Shown here: positions 3,927-37,762 of the stretch, piece by piece
How the letters are laid out: every line of letters starts with the position of its first letter
How positions within the stretch are numbered: position 1 is the first letter of the stretch
Assembly (NCBI GenBank): GCA_977017575.1
Contig: CDRNVI010000085.1
Coordinates: forward strand, 29,013 to 93,012
DNA: 64,000 nucleotides
Source: Paramoeba atlantica
Taxonomy: Eukaryota > Protista > Discosea
Direction: 5' to 3'
Notes under the pieces: model-generated
Told to the model about the DNA's origin: nothing
The model's input: only the letters and a program-made list of their open reading frames with translations
Database searches by the model: none
Translations under genes and position numbers: made by a program

Positions 3927-5472
3927 TTTACTTTTATTAAGACCTTTACTTTTATTAAGACCTTTACTTTTATTAAGACCTTTACTTTTATTAAGACCTT
4001 TACTTTTATTAAGACGTTTACTTTTATTAAGACCTTTACTTTTATTAAGACCTTTACTTTTATTAAGACCTTTACTTTTATTAAGACCTTTACTTTTATT
4101 AAGACCTTTACTTTTATTAAGACCTTTACTTTTATTAAGACCTTTACTTTTATTAAGACGTTTACTTTTATTAAGACCTTTACTTTTATTAAGACCTTTA
4201 CTTTTATTAAGACCTTTACTTTTATTAAGACCTTTACTTTTATTAAGACCTTTACTTTTATTAAGACCTTTACTTTTATTAAGACCTTTACTTTTATTAA
4301 GACCTTTACTTTTATTAAGACCTTTACTTTTATTAAGACCTTTACTTTTATTAAGACCTTTACTTTTATTAAGACCTTTACTTTTATTAAGACCTTTACT
4401 TTTATTAAGACCTTTACTTTTATTAAGACCTTTACTTTTATTAAGACCTTTGCTTTTATTAAGACCTTTACTTTTATTAAGACCTTTACTTTTATTAAGA
4501 CCTTTACTTTTATTAAGACCTTTACTTTTATTAAGACCTTTACTTTTATTAAGACCTTTACTTTTATTAAGACCTTTACTTTTATTAAGACCTTTACTTT
4601 TATTAAGACCTTTACTTTTATTAAGACCTTTACTTTTATTAAGACCTTTACTTTTATTAAGACCTTTACTTTTATTAAGACCTTTACTTTTATTAAGACC
4701 TTTACTTTTATTAAGACCTTTACTTTTATTAAGACCTTTACTTTTATTAAGACCTTTACTTTTATTAAGACCTTTGCTTTTATTAAGACCTTTACTTTTA
4801 TTAAGACCTTTACTTTTATTAAGACCTTTACTTTTATTAAGACCTTTACTTTTATTAAGACCTTTACTTTTATTAAGACCTTTACTTTTATTAAGACCTT
4901 TACTTTTATTAAGACCTTTACTTTTATTAAGACCTTTACTTTTATTAAGACCTTTACTTTTATTAAGACCTTTACTTTTATTAAGACCTTTACTTTTATT
5001 AAGACCTTTACTTTTATTAGGACCTTTACTTTTATTAAGACCTTTACTTTTATTAAGACCTTTACTTTTATTAAGACCTTTACTTTTATTAAGACCTTTA
5101 CTTTTATTAAGACCTTTACTTTTATTAAGACCTTTACTTTTATTAAGACCTTTACTTTTATTAAGACCTTTACTTTTATTAAGACCTTTACTTTTATTAA
5201 GACCTTTACTTTTATTAAGACCTTTACTTTTATTAGGACCTTTACTTTTATTAAGACCTTTACTTTTATTAAGACCTTTACTTTTATTAAGACCTTTACT
5301 TTTATTAAGACCTTTACTTTTATTAAGACCTTTACTTTTATTAAGACCTTTACTTTTATTAAGACCTTTACTTTTATTAAGACCTTTACTTTTATTAAGA
5401 CCTTTACTTTTATTAAGACCTTTACTTTTATTAAGACCTTTACTTTTATTAAGACCTTTACTTTTATTAAGA
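3927..5472. repeat. 18-bp minisatellite (TTTACTTTTATTAAGACC) x~86
   Basis: Near-perfect array. Three variant units each occur twice: C>G at 4016/4160, A>G at 4452/4776, A>G at 5020/5236. Confidence 0.98.
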
Positions 5473-5876
5473 ATTGCTCATCAGAATATAATTTTAATAA
5501 ACAAATAATCAATTTGTAATCACTAAATATAATTTAAATACGAGGCACCCAAATACCTGTGTTTTGAACGTTATTATAAATAAAATTATTTGATGAATAT
5601 AGTACTAAAGGACGTCCTTATAAAAACAATCTTCACCTCTCTCTCTCTCTTGCGAATGGGTAGTTCCCCGGCGGGGACCACCCACTCGCCAGTTCTCACA
5701 CTCACCCACACGCTAGTAATGAAACCCCCAGGCGAAACCCCCAGGTCGCCTACTACCTGAGAGCCCCCCTCATCACCTCGTACTCTCACTCACACATTGC
5801 CCAATCCTCACATCAACATACATCCCATACATATCAAAATCGCTCGAATATCCGTTCTTCCTGGTTATTGATTGTA

Positions 5877-8769: not shown

Positions 8770-9790
8770 TTTTTTTTTTTTAGCTTTATCCAAATAGAAT
8801 AGTCACTAATACAGTCACATAAGAATAAAATCAATTTCACGCGAAAATGCATACAGTTCATACACGTACATAATTATTAACAAACCCTATTCAAATATAA
8901 TCCCTCCTGTTTTTTTTTTTTTTTTTTTGCAATTAATAAGGGGGGAGAAGTATGAATCGCGGCATTGCCTCTATATTTTGACCCAGTAGACGAACCAAGT
9001 AGGTCCATTGGTGGGGGTATACGAGTTGAAAACAAGCAATCAAATTAGCAATTTGAAAATATAACTTTTTTTTTTTTTTTTTACTAAAAACTAGCAAACA
9101 ATTCTACCCGAAATCCACCCCTAATCAAATCACTCCCGCACCAAAACTAAGACCCGTGACGGCACGTCGGTTAGTGACTTGGTACCCCCCCTTGCCCCCC
9201 CCCCTTTTCGCAGAGAAACACCCTCCCCCCCCCCTGCGGCTATTAAATGATTGGGGGGGACCGAATTACTCATCGTTCCCATATCCAAGGAGGGCCGTGT
9301 CAGGGACCGCCGCGGGAAGTCGGAGTACCAGCATCCGAGCCTGTGTCCGCATCAGAGTGATGTTAAGTGACGTCACCAATTGGTGTAAGGCTTCCCCGTT
9401 CGAAAGGGTACCCCCGGAGTATGCCGCACGAGAGACGGAAACCTCCTTGAGGATCGCAAAGGCGCTTGGACTCCACGCTCCATAAGATTCCACGACCATC
9501 GCTCCAAATCGATGGCGTGCGAACTCTGCTTCCTCTCTTTGCTTCTTTTTGTTTTCGGTGGCGTATCGTTCCGCAAAAGACCCCGCCGTCACCCAGTTAG
9601 CATCACGGACTAAGTCCGTATACTTTGGTTGCTGAACATGAGTGACGGCGAAGTCTAATACAAGAGACTGGCCTAGCCCGATTGTAGGGATGAACACGTC
9701 TCCGGGCCTGGTGAGGGCGCCCCCAGGACCCTTGTTGCCCAGACTCACTTCTCTCCGCGGGGTGAAACCGGCCTTTTTACATTCAGAAGT

Positions 9791-10474
9791 GAAATCCACA
9801 CCGAGGGGCCGCACAGGACATAAAAGAAAATAACTATAAAGATGAAATAATAATTTATTTTCACATGAGTTCACCTATTCATATCATATACATGAAAAGC
9901 AAATTGAAACGTATGTAGCTTCTACATCATCTTGACAAAATAGGCCTTTCAAAACAAACAATATAAATTTATAATATATCACTATGTTAGCGGGTTGCAC
10001 CCGCCAAACCCGGCGGCTATAGGATGGGGGTTTGGTGGGTGGGACAAAAAAACGCGTAAAGGAAAAAAATTCTACAAGTAAGTAATCAGTAAATATGTAA
10101 ATTTTCAGAATACATATTGTAGCTTTTATACATGATTCAATTACAACCCCCTTTCGGGGAAAAGAACAATGAAAATTATAACCCCCTTCCGGGGCATTTG
10201 ACCCGATATTAGCCCCTCGGTTAAATTTCCATGCGTAGACTTCTAGAAATCCACACCGAGGGGCCGCACAGGACATAAAAGAAAATAACTATAAAGATGA
10301 AATAATAATTTATTTTCACATGAGTTCACCTATTCATATCATATACATGAAAAGCAAATTGAAACGTATGTAGCTTCTACATCATCTTGACAAAATAGGT
10401 CTTTCAAAACAAACAATATAAATTTATAATATATCACTATGTTAGCGGGTTGCACCCGCCAAACCCGGCGGCTA
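9791..10474 (-). repeat. B1-A2-(23 bp)-B2 terminal repeat block of the YR element
   Basis: Direct reading of the duplicated segments listed for the element. Confidence 0.92.
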
Positions 10475-10587
10475 CCTGCCCACACACAAGTCACAATATT
10501 TTCCCGAACACACAGTAATTTTTTTTTTCCGAAAATAACTAGGGAAGGTTAACACAATAATAGATGACCGGTCTATTATCGTGCCCT

Positions 10588-13504
10588 TTACATCACACAC
10601 TTTTCAATCTGTTTAATGTCAACTTCTTTACCCCGACTTATATGATCGGCCGGATTGTTCAACGTAGACACATATCTCGCCTCGACACAAATCCCACGTT
10701 TCTCAGTGTCTCGTATTATTTCTTTCAATTCCTTTGACACTCCTTCTGACGATAATCTCCTGTTCAACGCTGCCTTACAGGAGGTGTTATCCACGAAGAT
10801 ATCCAAGCACGTTCCTTTGGGGGAGTGCATAGCACGTTTGATTCGATAATCTCCTGTTCAACGCTGCCTTACAGGAGGTGTTATCCACGAAGATATCCAA
10901 GCACGTTCCTTTGGGGGAGTGCATAGCAAACTTTTTAATAGCTAAGCGGACCGCCATCGCTTCGGCCCGATTCACTTCATACTTAAAATTTTTCGGCCAT
11001 GCCTCACCAGTAATTAATACCTCCCCAGAATCAAGGTAAATGATGGCCCCCCATCCCTTCGCAGAAGCATCCGTGTATAACTTGTGGTGGTGAGGAACGG
11101 TGTCAGGATGAGGAGGCGGGGGTCGGGGAAGATTGCATATCAATTCATTTCGCCATTCGGTAAGTGTAGAACGAGTAACTACCGGAAGATCAACTGGCTT
11201 GTCGATCAAATACGGACAGCGATTTAATAAGTTGATCCTACGCTGCGCGACTTTCATCGCGAAATAAAAGCGTGGCATATTGAGCCGCAAGACTGCAGAT
11301 CCATACAGAAGACGCCCCACCGCCGCCTCAAGATCACGAAAAGACAATTTATGAAATTTGTCTTTTTGCAGTTTACTGACCACTCTCGGTCCCAGGCAGA
11401 CCGTATGAGTGTCGTGGTCGAAAGCCACCCCATTGAAAACATACTTCAAAGCAGGGGGCTGTCCGGCGTCTTTAAAGAGGCCGTTTGCTTTGGAACACCG
11501 CTCGTCAATAAAGCGAGCGTATTCAACGGCATCGTTCGCTGTCCCCGAAAAACGAACTCCGTCGACGTAAACGTCAGTGGCACCTCTGTGAAACGAGAAA
11601 CGCTCCTGACACACCGACCTCTCGCCGGCAATTGCGGCGGTAACAGTGTGCATGATTTCTGGTGCGCAGCGATGACCCATGGGAAGAACGTTCATCTCGA
11701 AAACTTCGCCCAATGTCGATCGAAATCTAAACTTGGGCCGTGCCTTCAAGGGAATACTAATTTGGTAAAAACCACAAGTGAAGTCGCGCTTCACTGCCAT
11801 AGCATCATGTGCTTTGTGTAGATATTTGGATGGGTGATACAGCGCAACTTCCGGTTCATAATTTAAAAGCCTGTTGTTGTCATCTCGTGTCCAGGATATA
11901 AACCTGCGGCGTTGATTACCTTCATCGTCGGTTTCAACCACTGTAAAGGGGATCATATATTGCATGGATGGTCTTTTGAGTAGGTCCTTCCCCGAAACCT
12001 TGCTTATAACGCCGGCGCCCTCAAGTAGACGTATGTCTTCCTCGGGCAAAGAACCACGTACCGAAGGCTCGGGGTACGGGCCTGTAGGAACCCATAAAAG
12101 TTCATTTAGTACCTTGCGAAAACGTGTGGCTGCCGCAGGATTTAACCATTCCTTCACTTTGTCCAATTTAATCACCGGGATTGACTTTTTCACATGGAGG
12201 GGTAGACTCATATCCTTCGGTCTAGCGAGCCGCGAGCTACGGCGGGCACATATAACGGAGTGCCTACGGAGATAGGGGACTTCGTGAAAACACTTTGTAA
12301 CATGAGAGGTTGTTAAAGTACCGGAAGGAGTGCAGACACTCGTTGTGTCCCGAGGGCCCGTGCCGTTGTAACGCTGTTTGCATTGTATCTGAGCAGTGAT
12401 TCTATGTTCTGGTGTTTTGTTAGGTTTTGAACCTCCTGCATGCGCAAATTTCCGAGAGAGATTTCGTGAAACAGATGAGTGATTGCCCCCCTTTTGATAG
12501 AGTGCGTCCCGTACCCCTGACCGAGTATTGATCGTATTTGATGGTCCATCTCGCGGACTGTCGTGTAACAGAGTCGTTGCCCGGGGTTCATGGTTTGGAT
12601 ATGCTGCGCGAGTTCTGGCGTTCCTGGCCCAGTTACAATGGCGTAAAGGTGTGGTCGAAAAGGGTTTAGGCGTGTGGTCTTTGTGCCCCTCCCCCAATAA
12701 ATTATCACTTCGCAGCTTGTTACACTCACGAACTGTTCTCTTCTTAAATCCGCGGTCTCGGTCCAACGCGCCGCTGCCTTCCAGCATAGGAGGCAACACA
12801 TGCTCTCCTTCGGATTCAAGTGTCGGCGTAGCTTTTGTAGAAGAATGGGGTTGACGGGCTGCATTTGGCGCGTGGGCTCTAGCCCCCCCTGTGCTTGCAG
12901 GGCCTTTATATATAGTTTTAAGGGAGTCGACTCTTCCCCCATTAACTGAAATAAAGTTCGCAAGCCTCCTGCGTAACCCATTCTCGTCGAGCTGGCTAGA
13001 GGCAGCGAATGTAGGAAGAGAACCGCGTTTGTGGAATTTGAAGGAACACCCTTTGCCGCGCAGTACTGCTGCATACGTAGCCAAATTCGCTCCCTGTTGG
13101 CCCATGTGGTCGTGGCCCACATCGGTTCGAGAGCGTCGCTCAGTTGTAGTGTGCGTGGGTCGTTCGGAGGAAGGCGAAGGATGGCTTGGAGAATGGCGTT
13201 GCGGTCTGCGGCGGGTTTTTCTCCTGCGGACTGGTTTAGTGCGCGTATGGGAAGGGACCGACTTCGCGGAGGACGAGTGGAAACAACATGAGGAAGGGGA
13301 GGATTGGAAGAAAGAGGGGGTCGAGGACGCCTCACCGGAGAGTCTCGTCGGGGTAAGCGCGTTTGTAAGGTTGGAGCGGTAGGAGCCCTTTGCCGCCTGA
13401 GGCAAGGGGCACGAGTAATAGGGGTGGGGGGCATTCCCTAGTGGGAACCCCGTGTTGCGCCGGCGTAACGGACGGCGCCGCCCGCCACCCCTCCGCGAAA
13501 ATCC
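10588..13504 (-). CDS. RT + RNase H, in the -1 frame relative to gag and overlapping the whole YR gene; RNase H end disrupted by an 84-bp duplication
   Basis: Track ORF 10787..13591: VKRDFTCGFYQI, VLPMGHRCAP, YVDG, LYTDASAKGWG, EVNRAEA, IFVDN. The true C-terminus is in ORF 10588..10830. The start is placed at the putative slippery site. Confidence 0.85.
12313..13434 (-). CDS. Tyrosine recombinase (373 aa)
   Basis: Catalytic-type motifs WKAAARWTE, THSIKRG, TKH, LLRY. It starts 3 nt after the gag stop, in the gag frame. Confidence 0.88.
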   Translation of the reverse strand: MPPTPITRAPCLRRQRAPTAPTLQTRLPRRDSPVRRPRPPLSSNPPLPHVVSTRPPRSRSLPIRALNQSAGEKPAADRNAILQAILRLPPNDPRTLQLSDALEPMWATTTWANRERIWLRMQQYCAAKGVPSNSTNAVLFLHSLPLASSTRMGYAGGLRTLFQLMGEESTPLKLYIKALQAQGGLEPTRQMQPVNPILLQKLRRHLNPKESMCCLLCWKAAARWTETADLRREQFVSVTSCEVIIYWGRGTKTTRLNPFRPHLYAIVTGPGTPELAQHIQTMNPGQRLCYTTVREMDHQIRSILGQGYGTHSIKRGAITHLFHEISLGNLRMQEVQNLTKHQNIESLLRYNANSVTTARALGTQRVSALLPVL

Positions 13505-14742
13505 TGATTCGTCGGATGGGAGGGACGAAACTGGTGCTGGGCCTGAGCCATCTGCGGGCAGTCCGCACGAATGTGGCCCGGCTGGTGACACGAGAAGCAG
13601 AAAGGCCGACGACGGGAGGATCGAACTTGGGGACGACCTCGGAGTTGTTCGTCGAGAACGAGTTGCCCATAACGATCCTTCGGATCATCATCACGATGCA
13701 GTCGCTGTTGCACGCGTTCGACAGCAACACCCGCAGCGGCCCAGTAGAGATTGCGGAGTTCCTCGATTATGAGTTCTGCCACAGCAAGGTTATGTTTCTC
13801 CATCCAACCCTCCGTCAGGCGAGCAGCGTAGATCCATTCGATAAGGATCTTGAATAAACGGTCCCGCTGCGGTGGCGGGTTGAATCGAACCCCTAGCTGC
13901 GGCGCCTCCCGCAGCTCACGGATGAGGTCTCGGGGCTTGAACAAATCCTCCGTGTCGATCCACGGTTGCCACGTAACCGGGTCGTAGGGGGAGAAGCTTT
14001 TGGGGTCTGTAATACGTACTCGTTCAAAGGACGGGATTAAAGATTCCACCGGCTGCCCTCCAGGCATCTTTGCCCGAACACGGACGACCGTCAAATCGTG
14101 ATACGTAATGTCGGGATGGGGAAAGCGGTATGCCGTATTGACATCACCATCCCACTCAGCGACCAATTCTAAGGACACTGGGTCATTTGGGTGCTTCATG
14201 TAAACGTCGCCTATGACTGTCTGTCGAATGTCATCACCTGGTCGAGACCACACTGCCTCGACAGTGACCTGGTATTCTTTGCGAAGAAGATTAATTATCT
14301 TGGTTACAAATTCTTCCTTAGCAGTCTGAGTCAATATTCCACGCGCATTTTGGTTGGATCGAATAGCACGGTCTACATGGTCGAGATTAAGGTCTTCATA
14401 ACGCTGAGGGGAGCGGGAAGGCTCAACTTGGTCAGGGTTGAGCGTGCTCTGCCGCCGTGGGGGAACATCTCCCGAGTTCTGGGGGGCCGTTAGGGGGTCA
14501 GGGTAAGGGCTGGGGTAAGGAGAAGGGTGTACTGTGCGTCGGTTTCGGCCAGAATAGCGCAGCGAAGGAACCGCGAAAGAGTCTACTGGCGAAGCTGGAT
14601 CAGGACGAGGTGGTCGCCCAGCTGGACAAGACAAGGAACGGCGTTTGTCGGGGTCCAAAGGGGAGAGAGGACGTGTTCGCTTAGGGCTGCGGTCTCGCTC
14701 ATGTCCTGGGTTCGCCGGCACGCGAAGTCGCTGGGAACGCAT
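13438..14742 (-). CDS. Gag-like protein (434 aa) with CCHC knuckle
   Basis: First ATG after the SL is at 14742 (MRSQRL...). CFSCHQPGHIRADC near the C-terminus. The track's extra N-terminal TIKIQFLYLV is translated SL. Confidence 0.85.
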   Translation of the reverse strand: MRSQRLRVPANPGHERDRSPKRTRPLSPLDPDKRRSLSCPAGRPPRPDPASPVDSFAVPSLRYSGRNRRTVHPSPYPSPYPDPLTAPQNSGDVPPRRQSTLNPDQVEPSRSPQRYEDLNLDHVDRAIRSNQNARGILTQTAKEEFVTKIINLLRKEYQVTVEAVWSRPGDDIRQTVIGDVYMKHPNDPVSLELVAEWDGDVNTAYRFPHPDITYHDLTVVRVRAKMPGGQPVESLIPSFERVRITDPKSFSPYDPVTWQPWIDTEDLFKPRDLIRELREAPQLGVRFNPPPQRDRLFKILIEWIYAARLTEGWMEKHNLAVAELIIEELRNLYWAAAGVAVERVQQRLHRDDDPKDRYGQLVLDEQLRGRPQVRSSRRRPFCFSCHQPGHIRADCPQMAQAQHQFRPSHPTNQDFRGGVAGGAVRYAGATRGSH

Positions 14743-14771
14743 AAACAAAAAACGCGTAAAGGAAAAAGATT

Positions 14772-14807
14772 CAACAAGGTACAGAAACTGTATCTTTATC
14801 GTTAAAG
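14772..14807 (-). other. Spliced-leader exon copy (36 nt) spliced onto gag mRNA sequence
   Basis: CTTTAACGATAAAGATACAGTTTCTGTACCTTGTTG contains the kinetoplastid SL core CAGTTTCTGTAC..TTG. It is followed by AATCTTTTTCC, not by a GT donor. Confidence 0.9.
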
Positions 14808-14835
14808 ACAAAAAAACGCGTAAAGGAAAAAGATT

Positions 14836-14870
14836 CTACAAGTAAGTAATCAGTAAATATGTAAATTTTC
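14836..14870 (-). promoter_or_regulatory. Trans-splice acceptor (AG at 14837-14836) in repeat A; second copy at 10072-10073
   Basis: TTTACTGATTACTTACTTGTAG|AATCTTTTTCCTTTACGCG. The same downstream sequence follows the SL at 14771. Confidence 0.85.
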
Positions 14871-15575
14871 AGAATACATATTGTAGCTTTTATACATGAT
14901 TCAATTACAACCCCCTTTCGGGGAAAAGAACAATGAAAATTATAACCCCCTTCCGGGGCATTTGACCCGATATTAGCCCCTCGGTTAAATTTCCATGCGT
15001 AGACTTCTAAAACTGTGCCGCTAGTGCGTTGTGGCGTGCGATTATACCATGCCCGCTTTTGCACCCCAGAGCGTGGTCACCCTCGGGATCTAGCGGTAAC
15101 GTGCATTTTTCCATAGGACAAGGCCGGGACGCTGGATAGATTGGGTCCCCTAGCCACCAGCGTGTGAGGGTGCGAAACTCCGTCGGTGTGAAAGCCAGAC
15201 CGGTTTTCTTGGAGGGGATCACAAAAGCCCATTCTGAGGCTCCTTCTCCTGTTTCTGATATCCATCTGGCCCGTGTGCGAAGGTCAGCTTTCGCAAATGC
15301 CTCGTGAAATTCCTGGTTGGCGATGGCGTGGCTAAGGTCGCGTTTTTTTTTTTTTTTTTTTTTTGATATTAACCTCGCTTCCCAAAGAAAGGGTCCTAAC
15401 AAAAGAAAGGGTCCTAATAGTTCACGTTTTGAAATTTAGCCGTAGAAACCAATTTGAACAAACTAATAATACTATAACATTCATTGTCGTTTTTTTTTTC
15501 CGTTCCTTTAGATATTATGTATATAATAATACATATAGGCATTGAAAAAAACGAAACTATGTTGATACATTTGGC

Positions 15576-18500
15576 TCAAATGCTGTACCTGCTGCTGCCT
15601 TCCGGGGATAAGTGGTTCCGCAACTGGGCGTACACTTCCGTCCCATTCAGTTCCTGAAGTAGGAGCTTGAACTCCATTTCAGTTGCTCGACGATTTAAGA
15701 GTGCCGCGTCGGATAGGACATGCAACAGAGATCTCGTATTTTGATGAAGAGAGCCGCAGGACAGCACTGGGATGCACTGAAATGCGAAGTCGGGAATTTT
15801 TCCGGATGTCACATATGTATCCCGTTTCCGCTTGATTGCATCTGTAAGAAGCTGGGAGCAAGATTTCGCTTGATTGGAGTTCGATAGCTCGTGCACCACA
15901 GTTAGATCATAAAATATTTCCCCGGTTGACCAATATATCACCAAATCAGGCCCTGAGCGAAACAGCTGACGTCCGGCACATGTTTTGTCATGAATCATTT
16001 TGTTGCTTGGAAACACTTTATTCTTGCAAATTCCGCATTGCCAAGTCGAAAAAGATCGCGGTTCTTTCTCGCATTGTATACCGGCCTTTTGTGCCAAATC
16101 GAAGATATACTTAACCAGCCGATTGTGCTTCATTGTGGCATTAAGCCCTGTACATTGGACGCATCCGGGGATGTGCTGCAAAGCTGTTTTGTTGTCGAGT
16201 AACATACGACAGCCGGGGCACAGCAGCGATTTCGGGAGTCGAGGATGAGGCATCCCAAGGCGTGTCATGATTGCAATCTGAAATGCACGCGTGGGTACAA
16301 ATTTAGCATTAGACTGTAACCAGTCATAGCTTCCTTTCCGTGTCGTGGCATTTAATATTGTGGCTAGCTTGGGATCGTGATCCTTTAAAGCCTCGTATGC
16401 TTTCTGGTGCAATTGCGCGGCTGTTGTTACTTCATCGATTGGGGCGACCACTGCTGTTTGACTCATTCCATTATCCATGATAGCGGATACGTTACTCACA
16501 TTGCCCGCCCGAGCAGAAATTGAGTTTTTGCGCTCTAGAGCTAGGTAACGAGAAGTTTCGTATGACGCCGCACGAATACTATGACATGATGTCAGACCGA
16601 GGCCTCCTTTCTTTAGCGGCAGCCGAGCCAATTCGATTTGCTCTTTGGTCATTTCTCCCAACCACTGGTGCAGCACTTTTTCGACGTTGTTGTCGAAACT
16701 GAGAGAGACCGCGTCGGTTAACGTTGGCTCGTGCACTCTTATGGCGTATTGATGCCTCACATTCATGCTTTTGGAAAGTAGCAAAAGTGAGACATTGTTG
16801 GCGCCCATAAGTTTTAATCGGCGAAAGGCTTCGGTATTCCTGACAAGCTGCTGAAACAAACCCGACTTTACAGATTCATCTTCTCCAAGGTGTGCCCCAA
16901 GGATCTTTATAGAATCGTACGCAGCCTTGACCCCTTCATTTGCAAGCTGTTCTGGAATCGGGATTTTTTCCTGTCCACCGAACCACACGCATTTTCCAGG
17001 AGCAAGTTCAATGTTGTGAGCATTCACCATTTCTTGGAGCCTTACAAATGCTTTGGCCAATGATTGTGAGTTTTTCGAAGCCATGTTCACGTCATCAATA
17101 AATGCATATATTTCGATGTCGGGAAACTCTTGTTTCAGAATCTCCAATAGTGGCTGCAGGAAGGCGCAGTAGTATAGAGATGCCAGCGGGGAACCTTGCC
17201 GGAAACCACATGTGCTGGGAATGACTCCGAATAGCGTTCCATCGGATCCGTAATACAGTAGCTCTGAGGGTTGGCCGTATTCAGCGTGAAAGATCCGTTG
17301 AAACGGGCGTAGTGTACCACAAGCAAATACGTGTTTGGCGATATCCGCCCTATTCGGGGAGTTGAAGGCGTTTTTGGCGTCAATGGAAAGAATGACGTGT
17401 CCAGACTTAAAACGCTCATGCAGTCTATGAACGATTTTTTCGCATCCTGCCTTTGACGAAACGCCGTGTTGCAGTGGTGCAAAAAGAGGGCCCAAAGTGT
17501 GTTCGTAGCGCTGGAGCAATATAACGCCGGCAAGCTTCATAAATATCTCGCCCATTGCCACTGGTCTGACTCCTCCGTTGGATTTAGGAATGGCTACGAG
17601 CCGTGCTCGGTTTAATCGAAACAAAACGCTGTGATCCACGAATCCGTTGATTAGATCCGATATCATATGGGCAAGATTAGTGCATGAGATCTCATCATCG
17701 AGCATGAGTTGCACAATCCCGTCTGTCATTCCAGTTGGGCCAGGGTTTACGCCTTTTGCGAGTCGCTTCCCTGCTTTCCGTAGCTCCTCCGTCATTATCC
17801 CGCTAATTATCGGCGCATCCTCCGGCAAAGAAATTTCGTATTGTCTTTGCGGATGTAAGGCGGCAAGCTTGTCAAGGGTCTCTTCATCCGTTAGTTGCTT
17901 TGGTGTAAAGGTCTGATCCAAGACCTTAGCCGCCTTGGAAGTACATCCATCCAATACTAGCCTTGTCGCTCGTTTGATGGCTCGTGTATCGCTCAGTGTC
18001 TCCTCTTTTCGCTCACCGTCATCGGGCTCCCGTAACGGGCGCCGTCTTCGCCTTTTTCCACTGTTTTCTCGAACAGTCGCTAGGGATAACTTAATGGCTG
18101 ATAGCAAACGGTGCCATATTTTTGTTCTTTGCGTGTGATCGGAATTTATATACTCCTGGACGATGTTCCTCAGCACCACGACAACACACGGAGCGAGGTC
18201 AGGGCTTATTGAACGTAGCGTGGGTATTGGTAACAAATCCACTGATGAATCATCTTTGGCTTTTTCTGGAAAGTTCATCTGATGATTCTCCAGAAACGCA
18301 TCCCTTTGCACAGTAGTATCGATCGCTGGCGGCGCTTGATGCCACGCTAGTTTATAGATCCGTACGTCCTCTTGTGGAGGTAAAACCCCGGAAAATTGTT
18401 CCCCAACTTTGTGACCAACAACGCCCCGATACGAGATAGATAACTTACCAAATCCTCCACGCTTACTATGTGTTCGAGTGACTTTGCCTATTGAGATGTT

Positions 18501-19068
18501 AAGCGCACCTTGTTTGTTAAATGTCCAGGCCACTGTACACATTGCGCCCGGTTTGATTTGCTTCGAATGCGTCCAAATCTCATCCGGCGAGGCCGGAAAT
18601 TGTGACTCGGGCGTTACATTCTTCATCAGGTCAAAGGATTTATTCTCCTCTGTGCTTGGGTCGATTCCGATAAACATGATCGCTGAATTTTTCTCGTTCT
18701 GTGACTTCGTTGCATTTGGCTCCCGCTCGGGTAATTCCGCATCGATTTTGGGACTTGATGGAGACCCCAACTGAGAGAGAAGCTGATCACGTTGGTTCGT
18801 TTTTTTCATGGGAGTTTCGGGAGTGTTGCACTCAAAAAACTGACGTGGCTCATCTGACGGGGAAGACGGCTCTTCAGAAAAAACATCAAAATTGTGAACG
18901 TCGTGCACGTAACCATTACCGATCCATCTGTATCCTTCAAATCGAGGGTCTTTGGGATCTGGATGCATCTCGATGTTGGTTTCATTGGCGTCATTTGCTA
19001 CCGTCGGCGGAGTATTCGTGTTCACTTGAGAATTCCCGTGATGTGATTTATGACATGTAACCGCTGTT
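15576..19068 (-). CDS. RT-RLE ORF, main piece of the family C element
   Basis: Track ORF 15576..19094. Its first residues are an artefact of the insertion junction. Confidence 0.9.
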
Positions 19069-19076
19069 CCATTTGT

Positions 19077-20539
19077 GAGAGTACACCACCCCATAGTCTC
19101 CGAAAATCTAGCTAAACTATTCGATCACGAGGTAGAAGAGGTGTTGAATTCGTGGTTTGGAACGCTATCTCAGGATCAGATAACTCAGTTACGTTTACCG
19201 GTTAAGAAAGGCGGGCTGGGCCTGACGGCTTGTCTCCCAATTCGGTGTGCAGCCTTTGAGTCCTCTTGGTATTCAGTTTTCGAGCGCCCAATTAATCTTT
19301 CAGCTCAAGTCGAACACCAAGGAGACCAGACGCACGCCATTTTGCAGTCCGACACCGACACCAGCGTGCCAACAGCAACAACCGACACCAGCGTTCCTAT
19401 CGACGAAGATACGGCGGCGGCAGCTCTTCACACGAAAGCGTGGGACCTTTTGTCTTCTTCGAAGTCAGACTCGGTTGCCATCTTACAAGCAGTCTCATAT
19501 AAGGGCAACGCAGAATGGGTCATGTCTAATGCTAAGTTTGTTCCCTCGCGCCTTTTTTCGCTTGCTTTAATGCCGCGACTCGGAATCGCGCATCCTCTAC
19601 TGCCAAAACAGTTGCTCTGCCCCGGGTGCCGGATTCTGCTAGATTCGAAAGCCATGCTCGCGCACATACCTGGCTGTTCGAAATGCCCCGGTCTCAACGC
19701 CACAGCGAAGCATAACTCTTTAGTAAATTTTCTCTACGAGTTGTGTTTAAAAGCTGGGATTCCCTGCGAAAAAGAGCCGCGTAATTTCGCAACGTTTTCG
19801 TGCACACAATGCAACGAAAAAGTGGATCCTGATTACAGACGGACGCATGGAAAAGTTTGCGGAGGCCGTTCTTTCCGCAGATCGGGTCCCGATCTTGTAG
19901 TTTTTTGGAATTCCGGCGAGATATTCTATGATTTCACCGTGATTCACGAGTTAGCGCCCTCTAATCTCGGAACAAAATGTGGCAAACTTTTTCGCGACGC
20001 GATCAAACGTAAACAAGACACCTATGTTCGCTCGGGTTTGATATCAGAGGAAACGTTTCGGTGCGTGCCAGTGCTGTCAGGCGGGTCTCTACACGAAAAT
20101 ACGAAATCTCTTCTCAACGCCCTAGCAGACGCTTGTTGCCTGCCTCGAAAACAGACGCAGATGGAGTTTCAACTCTGTCTTCAAGAGTTGAATGGAGCTG
20201 TTGTATATTCGCAGCTGAGATCCTTTCTTGAGAAGGACAAACGGGGTACAGACTATGCGATATGAAGGAACAATGGCAGGAATGTGTTTCGTTTTTTTTT
20301 GTTTTTGTTTTGATTTGAATAGATTGTAGGGTGTAGCGCCAAATTTGTAGTCGGAAGTCAACGTCCATGCTTACGTCGACGACGTTAATCTCGCATACGC
20401 ATCTTTCCGCCATTGTATTGCTTTATCGCATCAAGGCAAAAAGGCCCCCCAACTCATGCGTGACGCGATCTCCCGCAAGCAAAACACCTATGTCGCATCA
20501 GGTTTGATCGAATCAGGACAATTCGAATGCATACCGATG
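19077..20539 (+). mobile_element. Chimeric CRE-derived insertion: RLE-containing 3' part plus two short coding scraps
   Basis: 8-bp direct repeat CCATTTGT at 19069-19076 and 20540-20547. ORF 19075..20265 (thumb, finger, RLE) is followed by EVNVHAYVDDVNL (about 20354-20395) and QLMRDAISRKQNTY..CIPM (about 20450-20539). No poly(A). Confidence 0.8.
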
Positions 20540-30983: not shown

Positions 30984-31016
30984 CAACAAGGTACAGAAAC
31001 TGTATCTTTATCGTTA
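30984..31016 (-). other. Spliced-leader exon copy (33 nt)
   Basis: TAACGATAAAGATACAGTTTCTGTACCTTGTTG lies between the TSD and the 5' UTR. It is not followed by GT. Confidence 0.92.
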
Positions 31017-36001: not shown

Positions 36002-37762
36002 GGGTAGGGGGGACCTTCGATGAGTACTCATCGAAAGTCTACAACTTTCCGTGAGTCTCATCGAGAGTCTACAACTTTCGATGAGTACTCATCGAAGCGT
36101 TTTTGAGCGACCCTAATAGAGATTTTCGAGATTTTTTTATTACTCACCGAAGCGTTTGTGGCAAACAAACTGAAGCGTTTGCATAAAACAAATTCACAAT
36201 CCTTCGGAAGGGGTGGACACAGGTTCCCAGTGCGCTACCCGCGTGCTGGAGCGTGCGGGGCGCCAAAAGATATTATTATGTCCCATGGTCAAAAGAGAAT
36301 CCGAACTCCTAATCGATAATAGAAGCTAAGTCAGACTGCATAATTTACAAAAAGAAAACATATGATCTACTCATAGTCTGATGGCCATCAACGTAACGGA
36401 AACATGATACCTTAAAAGTTTACGAAAAGAATTGTACAATGGAAATTTTGATTTCTGAGAATTATATTTACGTTAGTTGGCCGACGGGCATTGTACGTTT
36501 GTTATTCATAAACTAGTTTATATAGTGACACAAAGCATTATACAGTGAACTGGTAATAGAGCGCGTTTTTATCCTTTGAAACTTTTTGGCGGGTGGTCCC
36601 CGCGTGGACACCCGTTCGAGAAAGGGAGGGAAGGGAGTTCTCTCCAGGAAAAAGTTCATGAGGTATATAAAATAGATTTGATACTTACTTCGCGAAGTTG
36701 ATATTACAGTACTGGTGAAGATAATGTCTTTTACTCTGTTGTCCATGATGGATGTTATATTTCGGTAGCTCTGTAGTTCTACAGATTAAACATTACAGTT
36801 TACATACGCTTACTATATCTGATTGACTATATGTTTTTCTTCCGGAAGTGCAATTCACGTTAAAACCGGCAAAATAGCTGAAGAATCCGTCCTACAAAAA
36901 ACAACAGGGCTACGCTCACAGTTGGGCCTTGCCTCTGGACAATCCTGCGGAAGGGGTAGACGGGTTGGGGGTACGTTCGTTGAGTTCTCAACGAACGGAA
37001 ATTTACGGTGGAAGTCAAGGACTTTTGTGGAACACCCAAGATTTTTTTTTGATTTTCCTTTTCCGTGCGTTCAGTATCCTACACTTCACTACATACGTTG
37101 ACAACGCCTCCGTAGCGAAAACTACGAAATTCAGTGAGCTTCGCAAATTGCTTCCCACTAACGACGCACAGGGGAATCCTACGCGGGGTACGGCTCAGGC
37201 CCGCTCACGCGGGCCCTCGCCGTTTCGCGGCCGCGCGCACCCCCGCTCACGCGGGGGCCCCCGCGCGGCCAAAATGGGTACTAAAATTTGTTATCAAGGT
37301 AGTTGAGCTTCGCAAATTGCTTCCCACGAATCTAGAGAGAAGCACACGTACAATAATCTTTAACGATAAAGATACAGTTTCCGTACCTTGTTGATTATTT
37401 ACTTTTTTTTACCTTTCATGGGAGTGTTCACACGCTCCCAAGCAAAAGAATCAGGAGTAGTCCTGAGATTTTGCCGCTCCCTCCTGCCCGCCGGAAAAAG
37501 AAGGCCGTGATGCCAACTCCTCCTCCGCCCGCCGTGCCAATATCCACCACCTCCGCATGGAGCGCACGGGTCGCCAAAAAATATTATTATGTCCCAGGGC
37601 TACGCTCACAGTTGGCCCTTCGCAAAAAATTGATAAAATACGAAAAATTGAAAAAGTCAAAAACACCTTCGATGAGTACTCATCGAAAGTCTACAACTTT
37701 CCGTGAGACTCATCGAAAGTCTACAACTTACGATGAGTACTCATCGAAGGTCCCCCCTAGCC
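36002..37762. mobile_element. Non-autonomous DNA transposon-like element (32-bp TIRs, 8-bp TSD), Merlin-like termini
   Basis: TIR GG(G/C)TAGGGGGGACCTTCGATGAGTACTCATCG at both ends. TSD GAAAAACA at 35994-36001 and 37763-37770. Excision restores the host reading frame. No transposase ORF seen. Confidence 0.85.
37355..37393 (+). other. Longest SL exon copy (39 nt, one T>C change) joined to the 5' end of a family C-like ORF
   Basis: AATCTTTAACGATAAAGATACAGTTTCCGTACCTTGTTG, then a T-rich UTR and ATG GGA GTG TTC ACA CGC TCC (MGVFTRS; compare MGVVTRS at 40961). The exact 5' boundary is uncertain. Confidence 0.85.

Follow-up and report, generated by a model that had tools for sequence, protein, structure and literature searches.

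A spliced leader lodged between terminal repeat and gag of a tyrosine recombinase retrotransposon points to replication from trans-spliced mRNA

We describe a tyrosine recombinase (YR) retrotransposon copy that contains a relic of the spliced leader (SL), which separates the terminal repeat from the 5′ UTR of the element and stands next to the unspliced acceptor. The copy occupies positions 9791 to 15009 on the minus strand of the window, by which we mean the whole 64,000-nucleotide stretch of DNA analyzed here. We consider it quite probable that it belongs to a VIPER/TATE-like family that replicates from its own trans-spliced mRNA, and that this copy was closed end-to-end at the tail of repeat A. 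Within this explanation, the trans-spliced mRNA as template and a non-homologous joint to the end of A are well supported by the sequences compared below.

Read directly on the minus strand, repeat A1 is followed by a short tail, the SL relic, the tail again and the gag ATG. Repeat A1 (14808 to 15009) finishes with ...CTTGTAG|AATC..TTTTTTTGT. It includes the acceptor AG at 14837-14836, with A1 ending ...acttacttgtAG (in a longer quote, ...ACTTACTTGTAG), and the first tail copy, AATCTTTTTCCTTTACGCGTTTTTTTGT, whose 28 nt (14835-14808) stand directly after the AG. The SL relic (14772 to 14807) consists of the stretch TTTAACGATAAAGATACAGTTTCTGTACCTTGTTG at 14806-14772 and, between it and the first tail, a C at 14807 that is common to nt 3 of the SL. 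The second tail copy, AATCTTTTTCCTTTACGCGTTTTTTGTTT, is 29 nt long (14771-14743; repeat family D8) and leads into the gag ATG (14742-14740) as a 5′ UTR, just as in a trans-spliced mRNA. A first-pass annotation of this DNA had described A1 with its AG acceptor, a 36-nt SL and the gag ATG in tandem, and its description is borne out by our reading and by a repeat search of the window, which returned a 32-nt repeat (14747-14778 and 14811-14842) with one mismatch, where the acceptor AG has its A and the SL end has a T. The 23-mer core of the SL occurs three times in the window, where none is expected by chance. From the joint as read, the 32-nt repeat and the count of the SL core, we conclude that the tail-SL-tail arrangement is real and exactly placed. 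The tract before the AG in A1 is moderately pyrimidine-rich and no more, which counts against our explanation.

The relic could be compared with the leader gene of the same genome. The 45.7-Mb assembly contains the SL RNA gene in tandem with a period of 1454 bp (L035/L036, G000:C3:780.7-782.2 kb), reading ...cccttgtt AACTTTAACGATAAAGATACAGTTTCTGTACCTTGTTG|GTATGAGAAGCTTCG...; every repeat includes a 5S rRNA gene as well. A GT 5′ splice site directly follows the exon (exon|GTATGAGAAGC), as in SLs of the kinetoplastid type. Counted from AAC as the assumed start, the exon has 38 nt, and the relic in the window is identical to its nt 3-38. On this identity, the SL in the element is the genome's own genuine spliced leader, as the first-pass annotation had supposed. 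Kinetoplastid SL RNAs conserve a GTATGAGAAGC intron start and a CAGTTTCTGTAC core, and SL arrays linked to 5S genes occur in bodonids; by its SL and its 5S-linked SL arrays the genome is kinetoplastid-like. A search of the SL gene repeat against Rfam matched 5S rRNA alone and no SL RNA family, and the window gave nothing at gathering scores.

Copies of the leader are frequent in this genome. A 32-mer of the SL has 672 matches, mostly followed by a short UTR and an ATG, and some 600 further relics stand at the heads of other retroelements. Many of these carry stutter or snap-back SL pieces, typical of a reverse transcriptase (RT) at a capped 5′ end, and A-runs, partial SL stutters or inverted SL pieces precede many of them. 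Partial repeats (CTTTAACGATAA and then the full SL) are found, for example, at G000:C3:649574, C2:553021 and C44:43627; inverted pieces (GGTACAGAAACTGTAT and then the SL) also lie 5′ of many relics, and many relics begin A-T-CTTTAACG where the gene has A-A-CTTTAACG. These odd 5′ ends may reflect stutter, snap-back or misreading by the RT at modified cap-proximal bases. Two more relics lie in the window itself (30984-31006, minus strand, and 37371-37393, plus strand, the latter differing from the SL core by one mismatch); each heads another retroelement or retrocopy and leads through a short T-rich UTR to an ATG. A dispersed repeat (L031-L034, at G000:C2:38803, C3:18104, C3:71391 and C3:184361, and about 400 further places) starts with a variably 5′-truncated SL, from about nt 11-15 on, and goes on with ...GTTG GTACATTTTGCTAGCCC... 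and hairpins; it resembles a short SL-headed retroposon and is not the SL RNA gene. In four sequencing runs of one study the depth of the SL is about 570 times that of the gag contigs beside it and behaves like DNA. Run X5, which at a guess is an RNA run, has contigs of high depth that pass from the SL into different sequences, although contigs cannot reveal where an RNA ends; among the Logan contigs of that run, none of the element was found.

Formally, tail-SL-tail is also an insert flanked by a duplication, and a free SL fragment inserted with a 29-nt target duplication would give this picture, as would an assembly or chimeric-read artifact. The Logan contigs of the sequencing runs break at the 32-nt repeat, and none of them spans the joint. 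However, the same architecture recurs in a second copy on another contig, which argues against misassembly, and the two contigs have different flanks and different left joints. In both copies, moreover, the supposed duplication begins exactly at the acceptor AG, unlike what an unrelated insertion would produce, and other YR families of the genome show tail-SL-tail too. We hold insertion and artifact alike to be highly improbable.

The second copy lies on contig C27 (at about 233.9 kb). A pattern census for SL|AATCTTTTTCCTTT found exactly two SL|tail joints in the 45.7-Mb assembly, those of the window and of C27, and a search with the sequence from A1 through early gag retrieved many A repeats and one further SL copy (C27:233730-234134). 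In at least seven copies A leads directly into gag, with one tail and no SL, which agrees with the prediction of the first-pass annotation that most copies would lack both the SL and the duplication. A copy with an identical ORF2 on ENA contig ERZ24900291 is also SL-less and laid out like the copy on C41. The C27 copy has a different site and flanks, open gag, YR and RT/RNase H (RT/RH) frames, and precise ends. Its host is another YR element, in whose RT it interrupts the Y-x-D-G coding region (L067 3700-3729, 8857-9180), and the insertion site, GGATATTTAC|ATAGAC, resembles the B|A junction described below; about 270 nt further on, the host ORF is broken by another SL-headed sequence.

The right joint, SL...GTTG|AATC, sits in both SL copies exactly at the position of the unspliced AG|AATC, so that the proposed coincidence of spliced junction and acceptor is exact in two copies at the DNA level. 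The left joints differ, reading ...GCGTTTTTTTGTC|TTTAACG in the window and ...GCGTTTTT|AACG in C27, where the overlap of the joint (...GCGTTTTT|AACGATAAAG) falls within T-runs. Over about 4.7 kb there is no substitution exclusive to the two SL copies, and each shares variants with different SL-less copies (columns 476, 1754; 700, 1360, 1500, 2027). Given that the two SL joints differ and that no private substitution is common to them, the two captures were probably separate events. The copies might instead descend from a single SL-bearing master that was copied faithfully, the C27 joint having arisen by a later slippage deletion of GTC plus some T. An SL-bearing RNA spliced at the AG of A1 could indeed be recopied faithfully via the tail homology, both joints lie in or beside T-runs that are prone to slippage and to long-read homopolymer error, and the frames of the C27 copy are open. 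Such a master would nevertheless be expected to leave more than two descendants and some substitution exclusive to them, and the ACC just before the gag ATG is missing from the window copy (a 3-nt loss) but present in C27 and the SL-less copies; we regard this history as unlikely. The phylogeny of the copies is star-like with few informative sites, and the captures could not be dated or polarized from the tree.

Tail-SL-tail is present in other YR families of the genome too. In one of them (L069 1718-1826, in four tandem 5093-bp units on G000:C1, and G000:C3:629725-630125), five identical copies read ...AGACAG, a 34-nt tail, TGA, SL nt 3-38 and the same 34-nt tail; 78%-related copies (C9:527463, C45:288806, C54:130592) also align across the SL.

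The proteins of the window copy identify the kind of element. The gag-like ORF (13438 to 14742, minus strand, 434 aa) contains a CCHC zinc knuckle and matches Pfam zf-CCHC at the curated cut-off. ORF2 (12313 to 13434, minus strand, 373 aa) found no match in sequence HMM searches against Pfam, NCBIfam and PDB, and an earlier AlphaFold model from six sequences was unusable (pLDDT 42). We then relied on a structure predicted for the ORF2 of the C27 copy, at least 99% identical to that of the window, with nine homologues aligned. This model (pLDDT 77.7) matches Cre (2hoi_A; E 1.7e-7, TM 0.63, about 300 columns) and also XerA, Tn1549 Int, P2/HP1 Int and integron integrases, and the nearest atlas clusters carry PF00589. 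The motifs WKAAARWTE, TKTTR, HSIKRGAITHL, KH and LLRY are recognizable, and the catalytic R, K, HxxR, H and Y are kept in the homologues, down to a Diplonema protein. By its predicted fold, ORF2 is a Cre-like tyrosine recombinase, in place of a DDE integrase. ORF3 (10787 to 12271, minus strand) encodes RT and RNase H according to a family profile search, with hits to a caulimovirus polymerase (8r0s, 6.4e-15), Ty3 (8.6e-9) and HIV-1 p66 (4.8e-8). It has 1583 homologues; family members match Pfam RVT_1, RT_RNaseH and RVT_3, and the window protein alone gives weak Pfam scores. An ORF of 934/970 aa was rejected, its N-terminal ~440 residues being an out-of-frame reading over ORF2 with only compositional similarity.

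The gene order is gag-like, YR and RT/RH with overlapping ORFs: a change of frame close to the 3′ end of ORF2 leads into ORF3, with an overlap of about 30 codons between the two. A few bases separate the gag stop from the ORF2 ATG, and both are in one frame (window 13434-13441; L067 5296-5300); in a related protein, P0010, the C terminus of the YR is fused to the N terminus of the RT. Expression by readthrough or frameshift is likely from this arrangement. A 94-bp tandem duplication (10750 to 10928, minus strand, as 10750-10834 and 10844-10928; repeat family D4) is private to the window copy, being absent from seven others; it shifts the pol frame and shortens ORF3. With this duplication and the 3-nt loss before the ATG, the window copy is probably dead.

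Downstream of the genes, all on the minus strand, repeat B1 (10246 to 10474; repeat family D2) is contiguous with repeat A2 (10044 to 10245), which has an AG and tail of its own. A 24-nt spacer, x (10020 to 10043; CCCACCCACCAAACCCCCATCCTA, also quoted as CCCACCCACCARRCCCCCA), then separates A2 from repeat B2 (9791 to 10019), the 3′ end of the element. A1 and A2 are 99% identical; B1 and B2, listed as 100% identical, differ at 1 of 229 positions in a base-by-base count. The element is thus built from A1, SL relic, tail, gag, YR, RT/RH, B1, A2, x and B2, and the YR element with split direct repeats (A1-ORFs-B1-A2-B2) that the first-pass annotation had proposed is borne out by recombinase, RT/RH and repeats. 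The same repeats recur in several forms: A-ORFs-B alone (L070), with one mini-unit A-x-B (the window, C27, L074) or with two (L071), and solo A-x-B (about 455 bp) or A-8nt-B units at independent sites. Given these varied forms, another reading of the split direct repeat is a unit in tandem with a SIRE-like mini-unit.

The ends of the element (flank|TAGAAGTC ... GTGGATTTC|flank) are precise in all units in the genome, and no target duplication was seen at the window copy or in the flanks of at least 15 units. In a contig that represents the host without the insertion, 15010 is followed at once by the bases beyond 9791, and the host ORF is open in frame once flanks 15010 and 9790 are joined. This host is a LINE-like element (window 15010-19094 and 9266-9790, minus strand) with a 1172-aa ORF (RVT_1, E 2.5e-21), which the YR element interrupts in its C-terminal part, ...GHGIIARHNALAAQF/TSECKKAGF.... 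Further along the window, 5000-5600 holds an array of more than 20 copies of an 18-bp tandem repeat, a stretch of 27% GC. At its 3′ end the window copy has no A-run or poly(A) such as a LINE-type retrocopy would carry; together with the precise ends and the lack of a target duplication, this indicates integration by the element's own route and not by that of a LINE. The B|A junction, GGATTTC|TAGAAGTC, is near-palindromic. It is conserved to 85% in a 71%-related family, among whose few conserved stretches it counts, and it resembles the core site of a recombinase. In ORF2 of an SL-less copy (L068 5003-9471) a 71%-related YR element is nested with no target duplication; this element has kept the x motif as well as the B|A junction (GGATTTC|TAATAGTCC).

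The left side of the SL joint is not peculiar to the SL copies. The end of A (...GCGTTTTTTGT) is also joined to 5′-truncated bodies of the same family at six internal positions (element positions ~2318, 2390, 2642, 4371, 4529 and 4534), with 0-3 nt of microhomology and, in some cases, 1-11 nt of filler. On the left, the partner always comes from the last 0-6 nt of A; on the right, it may be gag, SL, x or a truncated body. Such a fixed left and variable right partner is the signature expected if minus-strand cDNAs with varying stops were joined to one end. The coincidence of the left SL joint with the truncation joints indicates a step of the element's own cycle. It also bears on whether a resident element recombined with, or was converted by, an SL-headed retrocopy of its mRNA made by a LINE. 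SL-headed, poly(A)-tailed retrocopies are abundant in the genome, but the pattern census found no free SL-tail-gag retrocopy of this family in the assembly, the copy ends in a normal B1-A2-x-B2 with no poly(A), and recombination of this kind would have had to strike the same few bases as the truncation joints. We consider such an origin quite improbable.

The fixed joining point coincides with the base of a predicted hairpin. The last GU of A2 and x pair with the first ~25 nt of B2 (dG -27.6 kcal/mol, z -2.8), and the 71%-related family has the same helix architecture with different B partner sequences (z about -2.8). The x motif is conserved in at least four YR families and has 105 matches in the genome with up to two mismatches; of the 100 listed, all but one degenerate match adjoin a repeat end, and among the matches listed this end is a T-run plus GT. 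The fold suggests that the hairpin may set a start or a stop of DNA synthesis. A cellular primer complementary to x was considered and rejected: the listed complement matches lie inside YR elements, bar one degenerate match, and among the matches listed in the genome there was no free-standing gene, tRNA-like or other, with complementarity to x.

We hypothesize that trans-splicing adds the SL at the AG that precedes the last 29 nt of A, so that the mRNA of the family would begin with the SL and be without the initial ~175 nt of A. The 29-nt tail at the 5′ end of this mRNA would recur downstream at the end of A2, and normal completion through this homology would drop the SL and lead from A directly into gag. 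In the window copy, the minus-strand cDNA would have been extended to SL nt 3/4 and joined end-to-end to the very end of the A tail with an overlap of 0-1 nt, giving tail-SL-tail, and the recombinase would then have integrated this aberrant product normally at the near-palindromic B|A junction. Depending on the copy, the 3′ end of the cDNA may be a premature stop, the UTR or, after read-through, the SL. The use of the AG at 14836/14835 in RNA is something we infer from two DNA fossils. In our reading, the SL-bearing copies are aberrant end products that were not closed via the 29-nt homology.

This account retains the central proposal of the first-pass annotation, an SL-capped mRNA as replication template, which is well supported by the identity of the SL and by the joint at the AG position, and departs from it in the details. 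The annotation had the RT jump from the SL onto A2 with a 1-nt microhomology, C. The overlap stands, in that the gene reads AAC|TTTAACG and the C at 14807 is a 1-nt overlap, although this C could equally be the first base of spacer x, which follows A2. The jump itself is one of several routes, since a template jump of the RT onto the end of A2, a plus-strand transfer and cellular end-joining would make the joint equally well. Nor is the copy a frozen intermediate, as had been proposed: it is a finished, integrated and aberrant product, and the SL copy on C27 has open ORFs and precise ends. Finally, the annotation saw here a direct demonstration of how the element recovers its 5′ sequence. The joints show only odd joint places, in the last 0-6 nt of A, and the normal recovery route must use the 29-nt tail homology.

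A more specific version can be sketched by analogy, and we offer its parts jointly and only tentatively, thinking it rather doubtful that all of them hold. The boundary between A tail and x would be a true end of the replication intermediate, where the hairpin sets the minus-strand start, by fold-back or self-priming as in Tf1-type elements, or the plus-strand stop. A terminally redundant trans-spliced RNA (tail...A2-tail) would give unit circles closed via the 29-nt tail, comparable to those of pararetroviruses, and the SL-bearing and 5′-truncated copies would be circles closed end-to-end. The split repeats would then be tandem arrays of unit and mini-unit, formed by recombinase integration beside resident copies.

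Could the SL inside the element have a function instead? As a built-in leader, or as a mimic of an SL gene promoter, it might yield translatable RNA without trans-splicing. To our knowledge, SL RNA genes are the sole kind of kinetoplastid gene with an RNA polymerase II promoter of their own. CRE/SLACS elements do exploit SL genes (PMC12278014). Against this, the SL is present in only two of at least nine copies, with different joints, and the sequence upstream is repeat A, not the upstream region of the SL gene. The 5′-most SL bases are missing from both copies (two or three in the window, three to six in C27), so that an authentic SL start is absent. A function for the relic strikes us as very improbable. 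SLACS, CZAR and CRE insert at a fixed position inside SL RNA genes (PMC12278014) and, like the present element, are kinetoplastid retroelements physically associated with SL sequence. An insertion of the SLACS type was rejected: the SL is continuous from nt 3 to 38 and then passes into the UTR of the element, with no SL intron.

DIRS, PAT and Ngaro elements have the gene order gag-RT/RH-YR. Models for Ngaro, PAT and DIRS1, which are hypotheses themselves, restore the terminal information from the internal B1-A2 junction, through a circular intermediate and integration by the YR. The family described here resembles these models in its split repeats, in an RNA that would lack the start of A and in a B|A junction like a recombinase core, but differs in its gag-YR-RT/RH order and in an RNA 5′ end that would be set by trans-splicing, not by a promoter in the repeat. 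The closer likeness is to VIPER and TATE, which have a gag-like ORF, overlapping YR and RT/RH ORFs, A1 at the 5′ and B1-A2-B2 at the 3′ end, and no target duplication (PMC6681497, PMC12278014). By its layout, set against the published descriptions, the element is a VIPER/TATE-like YR retrotransposon. Its solo A-x-B units of about 455 bp recall SIRE, a short derivative of these elements made of A2, ~30 bp and B2 (PMC6681497, PMC12278014); unlike VIPER and TATE, the present family also has units alone (L070) or with two mini-units (L071). In the literature searched, we found no report of an SL relic in VIPER/TATE or other kinetoplastid YR elements. SL relics as tags of retroposition are already well known in dinoflagellates, where a sequence headed by the SL in DNA form is proved to have passed through a trans-spliced RNA (PMC5585692, PMC6050394). 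The dinoflagellate relics sit on cellular genes that returned to the genome as processed copies; that of the window is internal to a retrotransposon and stands between the terminal repeat and the 5′ UTR of the element.

Current schemes of YR retrotransposon replication are drawn from repeat geometry. We know of no case in which the reverse transcription and repeat recovery of these elements (DIRS, Ngaro, PAT, VIPER, TATE) have been shown experimentally. Where every mRNA carries an SL at its 5′ end, failed or odd replication products carry a readable tag. From the present family one would learn where the RNA begins (at the AG that precedes the last 29 nt of A), how long a homology guides normal completion (29 nt) and at which one point, the base of a conserved hairpin, SL-bearing and 5′-truncated copies alike are joined. 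Testable predictions follow: cDNA should end at ...TTTTTTGT, circles should contain B|A junctions, and x should be required; if the AG is used, the SL should also be joined to AATCTTTTTCC in transcripts of SL-less variants, for example GTTTACCATG. As far as their sequences tell, the YR elements of this genome, like its LINEs, would move through ordinary trans-spliced mRNA.
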